Below, piece after piece: positions 9,150-30,046 of a stretch of DNA of 32,000 nt; the first letter of the stretch is position 1; the number at the start of each line of letters is the position of its first letter. Source of the DNA: Paramicrosporidium saccamoebae KSL3. Taxonomy: Eukaryota; Fungi; Cryptomycota. A model generated the notes under the pieces. The model saw only the letters and a list, made by a program, of their open reading frames with translations, ran no database searches and had not been told where the DNA came from. The stretch is taken from the NCBI GenBank assembly GCA_002794465.1, contig MTSL01000178.1, positions 127,609 through 159,608 on the forward strand. Direction: 5' to 3'. The translations under genes were made by a program, and so were the position numbers.

Positions 9150-11859
9150 ATGGAAGACCCGGTGCGATGGACTCGTTTTCAGCTCAGGCAGCTCTGTCGT
9201 GACAAAAAGCGCAGCAAGCCAGTTGCCAAATGCATTAAAAGTGCCCGAAGGGGCAATTCTAAAAAAGGAAATCCCCCCAAAGACATGGCCATTTCAACCC
9301 CGCAAATTGACAATGTTGACACGTGGAACGACTATATCAACCTATTTAGCTGCGACCAGTGTAATGTTCAAATACGCGAATTCCGACTCTACTGCCGATA
9401 TTGCGAAAAATCCAGTCTTGACGAATGGAATTATGAGAGCTATGATCTGTGTCCTGATTGCTACCAAAAGGCGTTTCCAGCGGAGCATCCGCATCCGCGC
9501 GAAAGTTTTGCGATCCGACACATGTCCTACTTTAATCGCGATGTCTCGACACTCATCCCAGACGGCCGTTGGGAGGGCGTATTGCTGGAGAAAAGCAACG
9601 TTGAGAGACTGTGTGCTTTCTGTCATGAGAACGAGACTGCCAATGAGCCCTTCATACCCTTTCCAATGTTGCGATTGCGCAAGACTGAACTGACGGAACA
9701 ACCTTCTCAACAACGAGATTACTTTCATCGGCCATATTTTTATACTCACCATCGTTGCGCAATCCTGAGTCCAGAGGTATATCACTGTCCGACCCCAACA
9801 GCCTCAATGACAGGCTACTACAATGTTGCTGCTGCATTACATCGCGCTCGTTCATTGAAATGCACACTGTGTCGACGTTCAGGTGCCACCATCGGCTGCT
9901 TCCATGTCCGGTGCAACCGCAGTTTCCATGTCACTTGTACGGAGAGGATGGACGAGTTAGCAAATGGGGCAGTGTTCTGGTGCGAGATGCATCGAGACGG
10001 ATGGGCTGATGTTTGGAGCTGCGATGCCTGCGGTGTGGAAATGGACGACAATTGGTTTTCATGTGCCACTTGCAAAGATTACTACAATTCTTTTGATTTG
10101 TGTACGTCATGTTATGAGCGCAATGACTGGAGTCATGATCATTCAAGAGAGGACTTTATAGCAACCCAGAAGGCTCAAGAGGATCCCAATGGAAATTGCG
10201 AAAGTCCTAATGGAAACTGCGGAAATCCTAGCGTATCTTTATTACAGTCAACGGATCGATCCAATGGGCCTGTCATTACTGAGCCCTATGCGCACTCTAG
10301 TGGATCTGTCACTGCTGAGCTCTATCCGCAATCTAATGGATCTGCTCTCGCTGAGATTTATTCACCGCCCCTTACTGAGTTTTTCTCGCTATATAATGGA
10401 CCCGCCCTTGCTGATCTCTACTCGTTGGATCTTACTTCTACCATCTTTGATATTCACAACCGGGCACCTCGATGTATGTTTACTGATTCCCACTTAGCTT
10501 GTAGGGTCCACTCATAACTCGTCCGATCTCAGTGGCACTTGGATCCCACAAATCCCCCGCTGGGCAATCCTCAAATACACAGCAGAGACTACCAAGGTGC
10601 TGTCCAACTTTCTGGGTCGTGGTACTGATGCTATTGAGGCGACTCTGCTCGGCCGGGCCTTTCTCGGGATTGATGTTAATGCTACGACACTGGAACTTGC
10701 ATTGCGCAATTGTCCAGACGCAAATGTTCAACTGGGCGATTCCCGCCAGGTGCCCCTAGAGGACGGAACGGTGGGATTGGTATTATCTCATCCGCCATAC
10801 TACAAGTGCATTGTTTATTCGACAGCTGGAGAGGCACCGGGAGATTTGTCCCGTTCCGTTTCTCTCGACGACTTTTGCGTCTCCATGCGGCTCGTGGCGG
10901 CCGAATCGAGAAGAGTGCTGATGGAGGACGGACGGATTGTGCTGTGCATTGGAGATAATCGCGAATCACGCCACGTTATCCCCGTAACACTGCGTGTGCT
11001 GCAAGAGTACCTACGGATGGGATTTGTCTTGGAGGAATACATTGTCAAACGCCAACGATGCTGTGCTGGTACTGCAAAGTCAGTCAGTCTCTCCACAATG
11101 TTTGGATTTCTCCTCCTCACCCATGAAATCATTATAGTTCTCGGTAAAACATCCACAACTAGCCGCCCAATGCCGATTAACTTACTTCTGTCAGTGAGTG
11201 AAACCAAACGAGTCATTTCGGCCAGTGTCGGGATAAAACCCTGTAAGGGAACAATTTGGATGGTCCCATCAGCCTGCAGAGACATTTCCACGCATCTCCA
11301 AAACCATTTTAGTGCCGTTTTTGGTGTCGTAGGTACTATGGCGTCAATCCTTTCTGCTTCATTTGACTACCACATGGCGCTTCCGTCTGGTCCTTTTCGG
11401 ACTACAGGTGAGATTCTCGATTTGTCGACAGATTTTGAAAGAAAAAGGAGAGAGAATATGACTCGGAATGCCTCTTTCTTGGAGGTTTCATGTGTTCCTG
11501 ATGTCTCTGACAAGAGCTCTGTTATCTCATTGTTGATTGCCGAGCCTGGTGTTCCCGTCTCGGCGATTTTAGAATATGCTAAATCTTTGCCAATTGGGGC
11601 CAGCGTGATCGTCGGAACGCAGGATTCTCGATGGGAGGATGGATCGTATCACTCGGCACTGTATTCCGCGTGGAAGACTTGCAGCGCCGTCCTACAGCTT
11701 AAAGAGATTGTCTATGTGGTGCGCGAAGGATGGACACGTCATCCCTCCCAATATCAGTCCACTGTCCGTCATCCGACCGAATGGCAGCCCTCTCCCTCTC
11801 CGTTGCAGATTGCCCATCTATCATATCTCATATACACCAAACACACTAATATGCGATAG
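9150..11859 (+). CDS. ZZ-ePHD-ZZ chromatin reader fused to an N6A/N4C-type amino-methyltransferase plus degenerate second MTase domain; intron 10474-10504; 892 aa
   Basis: Two ZZ fingers (CxxC..CxxC..Y/FDLCxxCY..H.H) and an HC5HC2H PHD-like finger. Splicing GTATGT..ACTGAT..TGTAG (31 nt) gives RAPR-W-STH...GTWIPQIPRWAILKYT...VLSNFLGRGTDAIEA...GIDVN...GDSR...LVLSHPPYY; total 2679 nt in frame. Confidence 0.82.
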
Positions 11860-13810: not shown

Positions 13811-14795
13811 GTTCAGATGGCGGTTGTAATGCGTCATTTCCAACTTGTGGAATCAGTCATAATGCTAGCGTAAAGCAGGTATCCAAGGCTTTATAAGAAT
13901 TGTTGGCAAATTTCGAAAAGTTGCCTTATTAAAAGTGTATCCCTTTTGTAAATATCCACTCTCAATACCAATACACTGGATTAGGGTTCTGGAATAGACA
14001 TTTTTATTGGGGTTGTCAATGGACACTAACGATTTCTTTTGCGTCCCAAGCCAGACACACTGCGATATCTTAGTGTATCGAATATTAAGTGCACCCATCA
14101 ATGTTCAAGTCTCCGTGAAGCATGGTGCGCCAGTTAATTTTGTTATGGTTGCACGTAGTGTCGGCTATTAACCTATAACGAAGACACTAGGATGGTGTCA
14201 CCGCCTCAAATATAGCCATTTGTCTAGCAAGCACAGAAAAGGACCGACTAGCCAACCAGTGGACCGACGGGCAAGCAAATTCTTGCACACTGACCAGGGT
14301 AAATGGCGGTCTTATATAGTGGCAATTTGTAGAATTCCGCTGTTGATGGGCGAGTTGGCATTCTCAAACTATATGGCGCCATTCATAACATGACTGGAAT
14401 GAATTTTGTTGCGTAATGAGGAAGATGCCATGGACCAAGCCAAGCGTGAAGGGACGAGAAGAAAAGAGATGAGAATAGACGGGAGAGAACTCGTTCACTG
14501 TGCCACTGCTAGCCCGACGGCCTACTCCTAGTCTCACAAATTACGTAGTAGTAATCTTAAAATAGCAGGGATGTAGATTTCACCGTCTTTCACCGGTTGC
14601 TCCAAATACATGTCCTCAATACTCAACTGATCACTCTGTATCACAGGCTCCAGGATCGGTATTTGGGCTAGACCACCAAAAGTGGAGCCTGCTTACCACT
14701 CGCTCTGGCATGGCCAAACATCATTAATGCTTATTCATCTTTTACATCGGGCGTATGTTGGCTTTCCAAATAAGGAAATAGCATGAGCGAATCAT

Positions 14796-26514: not shown

Positions 26515-27871
26515 ATGTTGGACAGCGTGTTCTGTCTAGGCGTCTCGGCGTTTATGGTGCTGGGGCCTCTGCTCATAGCAAATCACAGTACAAACCATTT
26601 GAAGACTAATTGTAGTGTCGACGACGGTGACGCTGGTGCACGGGGCGCGGGTTGCGCAATGGCAGCTGATATTGTTTGTGACGATGGCCGGCTGTGTACT
26701 AGGCTCGCCCGTCTGGGGTATTCTGCGCGAGTACTTTGAAACCCGCATGGTGGCCATCCAGCTGGTGGGCAATCCGACAAATGGAATGTTATTTGGACTG
26801 CTGGGGTGGACGATAGCGCTGTTGGGTGGGGCAGCAGCCTTGGGGGTCCCTGTCCCAACAACACTGACCCTGATTTTGGGTCTATTAGTAGGGGCACGAG
26901 TAGCTGGACTGTCCGTCTCCCTTATGCCGCTGGGATCATTGTTGATTGTACACGGTGTGGTTATGGCGGCATCGGTAGTGGGAAGTCTGATCGCACATTA
27001 CATGTTTAATAATCTTGTAAACAAGGCTGACGACCCCCTGGATGCCGCCCTATGGCTTCTCCCATTCCTGTTTGTGTTTGTCATCCCAATCCACGGAACC
27101 CTACTGCTCATGTCGCTGTTTCCGCTCGTGGGAAAACCGCTTAGTCCCCTTTGGATGTATCTTTTGGGGGGCGGTCTGCAGATTGTATTCATGGCAACAA
27201 CGCTGGTGTGGGCGCGAGTATTCATTGTCAATCGGACGAAGCGGTTAGTGTTTGAGCGTCATCCCCAAAATGTGTTGGAATATGCGCCGTCATTGGGAGA
27301 GCAGCGTCTGGCGGAGCGCGGAATGGTGGTGGGAAGACAATCTCCGTCACCGTCGGCCGATTCAGGATCAAGTCAAGGCTTGAACAAGTCACGTGCCGAA
27401 GAATCCTTCACCCTGTTACTACTGGCCATTTTAGCCATTTCGGGAATCACGCAGGGGATTTTGGACATGGGTACGATTTTGGGAATGCATCGGGTGTTTT
27501 CAGGTCTAACAGGCACTCCAAGGGCATTCTGGCTGTTGGGAATCTCCTCGGTGGTACTCAGTGTGCCGATGGTTCTTCTGACGACAAGACGGATAGCAAA
27601 GCCTCTGGGCGACATTGCGGCACTGGGGATGATGATGACAACAGCCGTGGAGCTGGGATGTTATCTACCGATGCAGGCGGCCTTGTTCCTGGGATGGCCC
27701 ATTAGTCCGGTGCTATGCAAATTACCCGCGGTGCTATTAGTAGCGTGGCTTGGTGGTCGCGGTATCCATCGGAGGACGGCCTTGCAAGCGACATTGGCCG
27801 TGACTCTTTCCCCCATAATTGTTGTTTCGTTGGTAGCCCTTACTGCGTTCCTTGTTGCCATGTGGAGATGA
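26515..27871 (+). CDS. Highly divergent PiT/Pho89/SLC20-family phosphate transporter homologue, 442 aa; intron 26588-26615
   Basis: 28-nt GTACAA..ACTAAT..TGTAG intron adds an N-terminal TM exon (ATG 26515). Inverted-repeat topology with LGVPVPTTL and LGWPISPVLCK matching PiT P-V/I-S-T-T-H motifs, and QGILD matching HGAND. Confidence 0.65.
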
Positions 27872-28215: not shown

Positions 28216-28674
28216 ATGACGGACAAGCTTATGATGTCGCTCGACGACATAATCAAAACCGAAAAGCCGCGTCACTCTGCCTCACGCGGCCGTGCTGGAC
28301 GTGGCCGTGGTGCTTCAAGGGGAGTGAGCAAGACACATTCGGTGCGCAGCCATACCGCTTCAAGACCCAACACCCGACCCACCGACACTCGACGGGATAA
28401 CCGTCCCGAAACTCGTCCGGTAAGCCGTCCAGTAGCCCGTCCAGCAACCCGTCAGACGACTCGTCCTCATACCGCCCAGCGACCCTCAACTCAGCGACCT
28501 GTCCGTTCGCCGACAAAGAAGCAACAGAATTATGAAATCACCATTGTTAACGACCGCGCATCGGAAGCACCGACCTCGTACCGCACAATGGACGTTTATC
28601 CCAGTCGACCCGCAGTAGAGCGATACCGTCCGCCGGTGACATATGGACATATGGAACAGATCCGCAAGCCTTAA
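28216..28674 (+). CDS. Basic low-complexity protein with N-terminal UAP56/Sub2-binding motif (Yra1/ALYREF/UIF-like), no RRM
   Basis: MTDKLMMSLDDIIK matches the ALYREF/Yra1 N-terminal box, followed by an RG/RP-rich region. Confidence 0.7.
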   Translation: MTDKLMMSLDDIIKTEKPRHSASRGRAGRGRGASRGVSKTHSVRSHTASRPNTRPTDTRRDNRPETRPVSRPVARPATRQTTRPHTAQRPSTQRPVRSPTKKQQNYEITIVNDRASEAPTSYRTMDVYPSRPAVERYRPPVTYGHMEQIRKP

Positions 28675-28685
28675 TAAATTCGTTT

Positions 28686-30008
28686 CTATTTCTGCTTCTT
28701 CTTCTCCAATAGGGCCAATAGTTTTCGGACCTCAGTCATTGTAATGCCAATGGATGCGGCCACGGTGAGATAGGCGTGCGGATAGGCCGTATGATGAGTC
28801 CCAAATGGCTGTCCCATTCGGACGAGACGCGCTCCCGAGACGGAACGATGGAATAGACGTGCGCCAAGCATATCGTCAGTTGGATCTACTACGAGGGCTA
28901 TAGATATGTCATTGGAGGGTGTCTCCAAGACTCGATGGCTCAAGCAGAGTCCCTCCTTCAATGCCTTGAAACAGTCGATCCGTTGCTGCAATAATTGACG
29001 GTAACCAACGGCTCCCATGGACAGCAAGGTGATGAGCAGATCGAGAAGGGGTGAAATGCTGGCTCGGCCTGGATAGAGAGCAGCCACTTCGGCACAAAGG
29101 ACGTCTGCTCCAAAGACAATCGATCCTCCAACGGGAACCATGAAATTCTTGTCGCTGCTCTGTATCACTGCCGTCACTAAACCCCGACGGATGGCTTCAT
29201 TTAGTTGCTTGGTGACAACATTGGATTGCAATCCGTAGGCATTGTTGACCACTTGGGGGATGGCGTAGAGCTGACACAATTCTCCAATTGCACATATATT
29301 GTCACAGCCTCGTGGTGCAAAGCAACTGCTGGTTGCCACCACTGCTGCAATATTTTCTGCGCCCAGACGGCCAATGGTTGTCTCGAGGGCATTCAAATCT
29401 GTACTCACTTGATCCCTCATCAGACAGTTCTCCACCACCACCAGTTCCAGTCCCGTAAAGCTGACACATTTCACACACGATTTCTGGTCGATTCTCGGCA
29501 TCAGTACATAGCGACTTTTGGGACGTCGAAGGGCTATTACTCGCAATACACAGGCCAATCCCATTCCTGTGGCTACCGGCAGCACTAGCACACCTCCCAA
29601 CATTCCCAATTGTAGACCTGCCACCTTGATTGCCTGTTTCACCAGCTTGGTGGTAATAATCTGTATGAGGGAAGATCCGGGGGCTTTGGGCTGCACCTCT
29701 GTCAGTTCACCTGACCGGCCAATGCCATGGGCCAGACCAAAATGTCTTCTTTTCACGATTCCCGAGTATACTCGTCCTTCCCGCTCACCCGCTCCGCAAG
29801 AGTCTGGGTTGTTGTTTGCGTCCATGCATGCGAGCTTGTTTATAATAAACTCAATGGTGCTGTCATCGTATCCTTTTGAGGGCAGGGTCGGGTTGCCTAG
29901 AAAGTCCAGAAACAGCTTTTCCCGCTTCTCCACTGCCTGTCCCGCCTGTTGCAATACGCTCTCTCCACACTGGTCTAATTGACTGCCAATAACTGTCTGT
30001 GCTCTCAT
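28686..30008 (-). CDS. SEPSECS: O-phosphoseryl-tRNA(Sec) selenium transferase (eukaryotic selenocysteine synthase)
   Basis: Colinear with eukaryotic SepSecS: MDANN..GAGEREGRV, HGIGRSG..VQPKAPGSS, PVATGM, PRIDQKSC, SCFAPR, VNNAYG, PLP-lysine motif SSDKNFMVPVGG, YPGRAS, VSGAR, YPHAYL. Confidence 0.96.
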   Translation of the reverse strand: MRAQTVIGSQLDQCGESVLQQAGQAVEKREKLFLDFLGNPTLPSKGYDDSTIEFIINKLACMDANNNPDSCGAGEREGRVYSGIVKRRHFGLAHGIGRSGELTEVQPKAPGSSLIQIITTKLVKQAIKVAGLQLGMLGGVLVLPVATGMGLACVLRVIALRRPKSRYVLMPRIDQKSCVKCVSFTGLELVVVENCLMRDQVSTDLNALETTIGRLGAENIAAVVATSSCFAPRGCDNICAIGELCQLYAIPQVVNNAYGLQSNVVTKQLNEAIRRGLVTAVIQSSDKNFMVPVGGSIVFGADVLCAEVAALYPGRASISPLLDLLITLLSMGAVGYRQLLQQRIDCFKALKEGLCLSHRVLETPSNDISIALVVDPTDDMLGARLFHRSVSGARLVRMGQPFGTHHTAYPHAYLTVAASIGITMTEVRKLLALLEKKKQK

Positions 30009-30046
30009 TGGCGGGATTACAATTAGTCGCCCTCCCCTTGTCAGCC

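Follow-up and report, generated by a model that had tools for sequence, protein, structure and literature searches.

The enzymes closest to the gene described here are human and mouse SepSecS (structures 3HL2, 7L1T, 7MDL and 3BC8), the archaeal SepSecS of Methanococcus maripaludis (2Z67) and the SepSecS proteins of early-diverging fungi such as Polychytrium aggregatum and Hyaloraphidium curvatum. These enzymes act in selenocysteine (Sec) synthesis and depend on pyridoxal phosphate (PLP), which in the human enzyme is linked to Lys284 (PMC10164584, PMC5006159). Human Arg398 is joined by hydrogen bonds to tRNA-Sec's discriminator base, G73, and the R398E substitution abolishes tRNA binding (PMC10164584). 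An arginine at this discriminator-reading position is described as the general mode of recognition in eukaryotes, and conservation of the P-loop has also been noted (PMC11602143). Bacterial SelA, which also uses PLP and selenophosphate to make Sec-tRNA(Sec), carries out an equivalent overall step and is likewise a fold-type I PLP enzyme; however, it belongs to a different family, assembles as a decameric ring and uses Ser-tRNA(Sec) without a phosphoserine intermediate (PMC11602143). Here we analyzed a 32,000-nucleotide stretch of the genome of Paramicrosporidium saccamoebae KSL3 (hereafter the window; positions 127,609 to 159,608 of scaffold MTSL01000178.1, assembly GCA_002794465.1), which holds a SepSecS gene at 28686..30008 on the minus strand. 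The gene is complete and of canonical eukaryotic type, and its sequence features suggest that the lineage probably still uses selenocysteine.

The SepSecS coding sequence is a single exon of 440 amino acids plus a stop codon, and its assignment draws on open reading frame (ORF), Pfam, NCBIfam, PDB and AlphaFold2 evidence. In the ORF call on the window it begins with ATG and has one stop, the terminal one, with no internal stops. The Pfam SepSecS profile PF05889 spans residues 62-436 (E = 8.4e-114; 380.7 bits against a cutoff of 21.1; 386 of 389 profile positions), and the NCBIfam equivalog TIGR03531 scores 478.9 bits, its cutoff being 224.85, with profile positions 5-442 of 444 covered by the protein. 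A sequence search of the PDB returned SepSecS chains only. Mouse and human chains matched residues 19-436 at E ~1e-103, whereas the archaeal chain scored E = 4e-67, which marks the protein as clearly eukaryotic-type and not archaeal. The arginine with which it would read the discriminator base is likewise of the eukaryotic kind (PMC11602143). Identity to the human and mouse enzymes is ~50% in local alignment and 42-43% in the Foldseek structure alignment. The window protein has no SelA matches. A preliminary description of this DNA, made from the sequence alone, had called the gene a full-length, intact 440-residue SepSecS, and the ORF, PF05889, TIGR03531 and PDB matches uphold that claim at the coordinates given, well past what chance would allow. 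It had also reported a PLP lysine motif and conserved active-site segments, and these are indeed present, as SSDKNFMVPVGG plus GEREGR, GIGRSGE..VQPK, PRIDQKSC, VNNAYG and YPGRAS. The gene is real and intact, looks functional and almost certainly is so.

An AlphaFold2 model of the protein, built on a 41-sequence alignment, has a mean predicted local distance difference test score (pLDDT) of 90.2 and a predicted template modeling score of 0.90. Fold comparison by Foldseek superposed it on human SepSecS 7L1T with a template modeling (TM) score of 0.91 and a root-mean-square deviation (rmsd) of 2.1 Å. Human and mouse SepSecS account for the 22 entries that match its structure best (TM 0.86-0.91; rmsd ~2 Å), followed by archaeal SepSecS (TM 0.88); M. 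maripaludis SepSecS has the same family and fold at 31% identity. Sphingosine-1-phosphate lyases, the fold family that ranks after SepSecS, reach a TM of just 0.5-0.6. The protein is therefore predicted to be folded as a PLP enzyme of fold type I and to be superposable on the solved SepSecS structures. It shares with the human and mouse enzymes the PLP lysine, the phosphate loop, the active-site arginines and the Arg398 equivalent. Human SEPSECS has 501 residues, whereas the window protein ends just past helix alpha15 and so has neither the acidic C-terminal extension nor the helix alpha16 of the mammalian proteins. The absence of the extension is expected because it is a vertebrate/mammalian innovation (PMC11602143). 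The basic residues K38 and K40 of human helix alpha1 are not conserved either, which is consistent with the weak conservation of SepSecS tRNA-binding surfaces (PMC11602143).

The SepSecS proteins of Polychytrium and Hyaloraphidium are likewise eukaryotic-type, fungal and from outside Dikarya, but they are just 44-45% identical to the window protein, and the Paramicrosporidium clade forms a separate, longer branch. Signatures of this clade include LMPRIDQKSC (not LWPRIDQKSC), MDANNN and FGxHHDxYP, with AIGQT in most members. The hosts also differ. An identical 440-residue protein is encoded on a single public contig, MTSL01000178.1, and Quandt et al. 2017 give MTSL00000000 as the accession of the P. 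saccamoebae genome. The preliminary description had supposed a Rozellomycota-like parasite, correctly so: NCBI taxonomy places Paramicrosporidium saccamoebae in Fungi, phylum Rozellomycota. This early-diverging relative of microsporidia is an obligate intranuclear parasite of amoebae with a genome of 7.3 Mb in 221 scaffolds, 3750 genes and 47% GC (Quandt et al. 2017), whereas the known Sec-using fungi are free-living or gut-dwelling. Core-gene completeness of the assembly is 89%.

Residues were numbered by alignment to human 3HL2 and by two multiple alignments, one of 41 eukaryotic sequences and one of 12 sequences. In the phosphate-binding loop GIGRSGELTEVQPK (residues 95-108; 29685..29726, minus strand), located by the 3HL2 alignment, R98, S99, Q106 and K108 are the counterparts of human R97, S98, Q105 and K107 and are invariant in both multiple alignments. 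The PLP Schiff-base lysine of motif SSDKNFMVPVGG is K287 (human K284), whose codon lies at 29148..29150 (minus strand) and whose alignment column is invariant. R315 (human R313; codon 29064..29066, minus strand) is the active-site arginine of YPGRAS, also in an invariant column of both alignments, and we take its role to be that of R313 in the 2009 structure work on human SepSecS-tRNASec. R388 (human R398; codon 28845..28847, minus strand) aligns with the residue that reads G73, the discriminator base. The context is LFHRSVSGAR, against LFTRQVSGAR in human, and the column is nearly invariant in both alignments. Further kept residues are R76 (human R75), K176 (human K173) and N255. All of R76, R98, S99, Q106, K108, K176, N255, K287, R315 and R388 are conserved, and most are invariant in the 41 eukaryotic sequences; beyond the equivalents of Lys284 and Arg398, the active-site residues presumably have the roles assigned to them in structural studies of the human and mouse enzymes.

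If it works as its human and archaeal counterparts do, the protein would act as a PLP-dependent O-phosphoseryl-tRNA(Sec) selenium transferase that binds Sep-tRNA(Sec). Arg388 would read the G73 discriminator base of tRNA-Sec, the Lys287-bound PLP cofactor would serve to eliminate phosphate from the tRNA-bound phosphoserine, and selenium from selenophosphate would then be added to give Sec-tRNA(Sec).

To place the gene among its relatives, proteins were searched in a collection of 5.8 billion sequences, and the statements made here cover the best 120 matches of each search. The closest proteins among the matches listed come from metagenome and Sequence Read Archive (SRA) assemblies and are 45-80% identical, while the named matches among those listed belong to molluscs, crustaceans, the chytrid Polychytrium, dictyostelids and an oomycete, at 41-48% identity. 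The nearest relative, at 80% identity, is found on two short Joint Genome Institute (JGI) contigs (L002 and L003) that carry the SepSecS gene alone. Longer contigs of other relatives preserve a block in the order ankyrin-repeat gene (Ank) - SepSecS - small ORF - PHO4-like - Elp2-like - RPS2 - ERGIC53-like lectin. The block is collinear in three contig sets: JGI contigs L004/L005, where a ubiquitin-L40 gene is inserted; L006 from the European Nucleotide Archive (ENA) with the Logan contig L007, where an Rft1 gene is inserted as well; and the Logan contigs L008/L009, where the order is again the same. Spt6 comes after the lectin where the contig extends far enough (the window and L004), and the orthology of each neighbor gene is supported by both blastp and tblastn. 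The relatives occur in JGI metagenomes 3300037657, 3300037044, 3300042203 and 3300042204, in ENA assembly ERZ27237304 and in SRA runs SRR13203278, SRR28204434 and SRR28204431. This collinearity argues that SepSecS has been vertically inherited and has occupied the same locus ever since the members of a Paramicrosporidium-like clade, itself fairly deep, shared an ancestor.

Sequence relationships point the same way, and the question of vertical or horizontal origin raised in the preliminary description is best answered as vertical. The 12 clade SepSecS proteins form one neighbor-joining clade (bootstrap 170/200). In a search with the clade profile, clade members score 595-758 bits and everything else among the matches listed 589 bits or less, the best-scoring named protein among those matches being that of Polychytrium (586 bits). 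When SepSecS proteins from outside (chytrid, monoblepharid, dictyostelid, filasterean, green-algal and oomycete) were used as queries, the 12 clade proteins ranked 149-173 of 173. A foreign source for the gene, either as a contaminant or through its recent horizontal acquisition from the host amoeba or some other eukaryote of the culture, deserves mention in that the parasite is cultured inside Saccamoeba, and Amoebozoa possess SepSecS, with dictyostelid matches at 42-47% identity. Nevertheless, the gene sits in a scaffold of 186,989 bp, is flanked by typical compact parasite genes, and has a GC content of 51%, the same as that of the window. Several metagenome and SRA assemblies of uncultured relatives, each independent of the others, show the gene in a collinear position, and its closest sequences are those of its own clade, not nested in Amoebozoa or Metazoa. 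We consider a foreign source extremely improbable and reject it, as the conserved gene order contradicts it.

The gene is also under constraint. Compared with the 80%-identical relative on L002, SepSecS has a ratio of nonsynonymous to synonymous substitution rates (dN/dS) of 0.136 (dN = 0.121, dS = 0.89; Nei-Gojobori), and the ORF is intact in 12 of 12 clade members at 45-80% identity. Identity to three more distant relatives is 52, 49 and 45% for SepSecS, as compared with 47, 42 and 38% for the Elp2-like protein, 49, 30 and 37% for the lectin, 41, 37 and 35% for the ankyrin protein and 37, 40 and 42% for the PHO4-like protein. The only neighboring genes that exceed it in conservation are RPS2 (87-90%) and a prenyltransferase (66%). 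Judged from these comparisons, SepSecS is conserved at least as tightly as its housekeeping neighbors and is under strong purifying selection. This bears on whether the gene could be a decaying relic, recently freed from selection after Sec loss and still intact by chance. The sole point in favor of such a relic is that the other parts of the pathway were not seen, and it is met by a dN/dS of 0.136 with near-saturated synonymous change, by intact ORFs in all 12 clade members, and by conservation above most neighboring genes. Because SepSecS is conserved as tightly as the housekeeping genes around it, a decaying relic is ruled out; a pseudogene was rejected on the dN/dS value, and we give this explanation almost no credence.

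We consider it likely that the gene encodes a working canonical SepSecS, vertically inherited, within a Sec pathway that has been retained. Most simply interpreted, the data would mean that the clade still decodes UGA as selenocysteine in a small selenoproteome; enzymatic activity would then be expected, and other parts of the genome would hold tRNA-Sec, PSTK, SPS2, eEFSec, SBP2 and one or more selenoproteins. The preliminary description had stated that the gene implies selenocysteine biosynthesis. That statement gains indirect support from the low dN/dS, from conservation at or above that of housekeeping neighbors and from the kept catalytic and discriminator-reading residues. Sec use itself is probable.

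Several observations weigh against a retained pathway. The P. saccamoebae DNA examined for Sec components comprised the window and its 10-kb flanks (L001, L090), ~52 kb or ~0.7% of the 7.3-Mb genome. ARAGORN found no tRNA genes of any kind in the window, the two flanks or the relatives' contigs. An Rfam scan (E <= 1) of the window, the flanks and the relatives' contigs gave no matches to tRNA-Sec or to the selenocysteine insertion sequence (SECIS), the window yielding a 5S rRNA, one weak match of snoRNA-like type and nothing else. Pfam domains of the Sec machinery were absent from the called genes of the ~52 kb and of the relatives' contigs, and a read-through scan found no credible gene with an in-frame UGA in the window. 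The scan did return 17 UGA read-through ORFs with redox-type motifs, all of them alternative frames of known genes, and they were discarded as noise. These results agree with the preliminary description, which had noted no tRNA-Sec, SECIS or selenoprotein in the window. Because only ~0.7% of the genome was covered, the lack of Sec components is uninformative and says almost nothing either way. No other named protein of Rozellomycota or of Microsporidia appears in the best 120 matches of either search, and none of Rozella or Mitosporidium in those of the clade-profile search; Sec use, if present, is thus distributed patchily among these lineages. Finally, the window protein is missing ~12 residues of a hairpin in the C-terminal domain (human 407-418) that are present in all other SepSecS sequences compared, except that the deletion is common to the window protein and its 80%-identical relative P0002. 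The deletion site in the alignment, ARLVRMGQPFGTHH, lies at 28791..28832 (minus strand), and AlphaFold2 confidence is lower there (pLDDT 77-81).

The same deletion, being lineage-specific, can be read in favor of an orphan or repurposed enzyme, in which Sec decoding was lost and SepSecS came under selection for another PLP-dependent reaction; candidates are reactions on other tRNA-bound phosphoserine, on free phosphoserine, or in selenium or sulfur transfer. Such an outcome would also fit a reduced intranuclear parasite with 3750 genes, in which an extra pathway of at least five genes might erode, and none of the other Sec components was observed in the ~52 kb. Set against this, all residues of the canonical reaction are kept in about 12 divergent clade members, including the discriminator-reading arginine and the phosphate loop. 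To our knowledge, SepSecS vanishes along with the Sec machinery in insects, nematodes, plants and Dikarya, and no free-standing SepSecS is known, which disfavors repurposing. We regard an orphan enzyme as unlikely. Quite unlikely, too, is that the whole Paramicrosporidium-like clade lost UGA-to-Sec decoding yet keeps a free-standing SepSecS for a different job, such as another tRNA-dependent or selenium/sulfur-transfer reaction; we know of no such case in any eukaryote. A retained Sec pathway is further favored over an orphan enzyme by Amses et al. 2022, who by implication count a member of the rozellid phylum as Sec-encoding.

Our literature search found no statement linking Paramicrosporidium with selenocysteine. 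The abstract of the 2019 survey of Sec use in fungi reportedly listed only Chytridiomycota, Zoopagomycota and Mucoromycota. Sec use in fungi is nevertheless established, in nine early-diverging species according to a review (citing Mariotti et al. 2019). Using a hidden Markov model (HMM) search of a 137-taxon set, Amses et al. 2022 (PMC9457484) report Sec in every early-diverging fungal phylum but Aphelidiomycota and Neocallimastigomycota. The same authors treat Rozellomycota/Cryptomycota as a phylum and cite the P. saccamoebae genome paper. Since Rozellomycota is counted as a phylum and is not among the exceptions, the study implies that a Sec-positive rozellid was already scored, which in effect amounts to a report of one. 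The suggestion in the preliminary description that the gene would extend Sec usage is weakened accordingly. The pattern conforms to that of an ancestral opisthokont trait kept patchily, as set out in Amses et al. 2022. Selenium is unmentioned in the P. saccamoebae genome paper (Quandt et al. 2017), the supplements of which contain no Sec-related term, and Paramicrosporidium is unmentioned in one supplementary file of PMC11602143. The present analysis contributes evidence of strong constraint on the gene and of its fixation within one collinear block in around a dozen uncultured relatives.

If the full pathway is present, Sec use would reach the branch of Rozellomycota and Microsporidia, where the fungal tree diverges earliest and is most reduced, and this would support Sec as ancestral in fungi and lost many times. 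A 3750-gene intranuclear parasite would then retain a costly recoding system, and whichever selenoprotein it serves would probably matter to the organism. The uncultured relatives, which share the locus, offer a ready comparative data set. Practical value is modest, and the enzyme itself is ordinary.

The surroundings of SepSecS are extremely compact. A head-to-head spacer of 38 bp (30009..30046, no strand assigned) separates the SepSecS ATG from that of the ankyrin-repeat gene, which was called on L001; the same divergent pair is seen in relatives, and the spacer presumably acts as a shared minimal promoter region. On the other side lies a small conserved ORF of 152 amino acids (28216..28674, plus strand; from the ORF call, and part of the conserved block), tail-to-tail with SepSecS. 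The two stop codons are 11 bp apart (28675-28685), and the 3' ends of the convergent transcripts probably overlap. The small ORF has no Pfam or NCBIfam matches and is not evidently related to Sec. It keeps its position in two relatives (L004 11616-11969; L006 11664-12026, in the L006/L007 set), where detectable similarity is confined to a C-terminal stretch of ~40-55 residues at 41-45% identity. In the window it starts with MTDKLMMSLDDIIK, followed by RG-rich sequence, an N-terminus that we take to resemble those of mRNA-export adaptors, with no family match. Beyond it, at 26615-27871 (plus strand), is a 418-residue membrane protein with no Pfam match that is 37-42% identical to the gene annotated as PHO4 (phosphate transporter) at the same position in relatives.

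A scan of JGI metagenome contigs with the clade alignment, in a collection that excludes the metagenomes carrying close relatives, gave a best match of 47% identity, and the 80 loci listed stem from eukaryotes of other kinds. Compost metagenome contigs L033 (64 kb) and L034 (112 kb) carry an apparently intron-less SepSecS (match at 10001-11341, 39% identity), and their source could be another compact Sec-using eukaryote. In L008, the gene upstream of SepSecS contains a palindromic hairpin (1499-1596) with weak microRNA-family matches on both strands, probably a mere inverted repeat.

The rest of the window is densely packed with ordinary eukaryotic genes, among them Nudix, alpha/beta hydrolase, M48-like, UBX and PHD-like zinc finger proteins, an amino-acid permease, an ABCD transporter, Spt6, the ERGIC53-type lectin, RPS2 and the Elp2-like WD40 protein. 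The 5S rRNA gene is full length (913-1031, plus strand; RF00001, 110 bits) and lies between the Nudix gene and a 701-residue ORF. The snoRNA-like match, to the H/ACA snoRNA SNORA9 (14156-14288, minus strand), is weak, with 31.5 bits against a gathering score of 85 and E = 0.012. It falls in a 1.1-kb interval that separates the amino-acid permease gene from the ABCD transporter gene and may be a real snoRNA or a chance match. The M48/Ste24-like protein (5637-6986, plus strand; PF01435, E = 1e-7) has AAREFGHW in place of the zinc motif HExxH, so that the first histidine is an arginine, and may be an inactive protease homologue. At 9150-11859 (plus strand) two ORFs were called, one for a PHD-like zinc finger (9150-10517), the other for an N6_N4 DNA-methylase-like domain (10597-11859); the public annotation fuses them into one product of 798 residues. 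A prokaryote-type DNA methylase domain in the P. saccamoebae genome could itself be of note.

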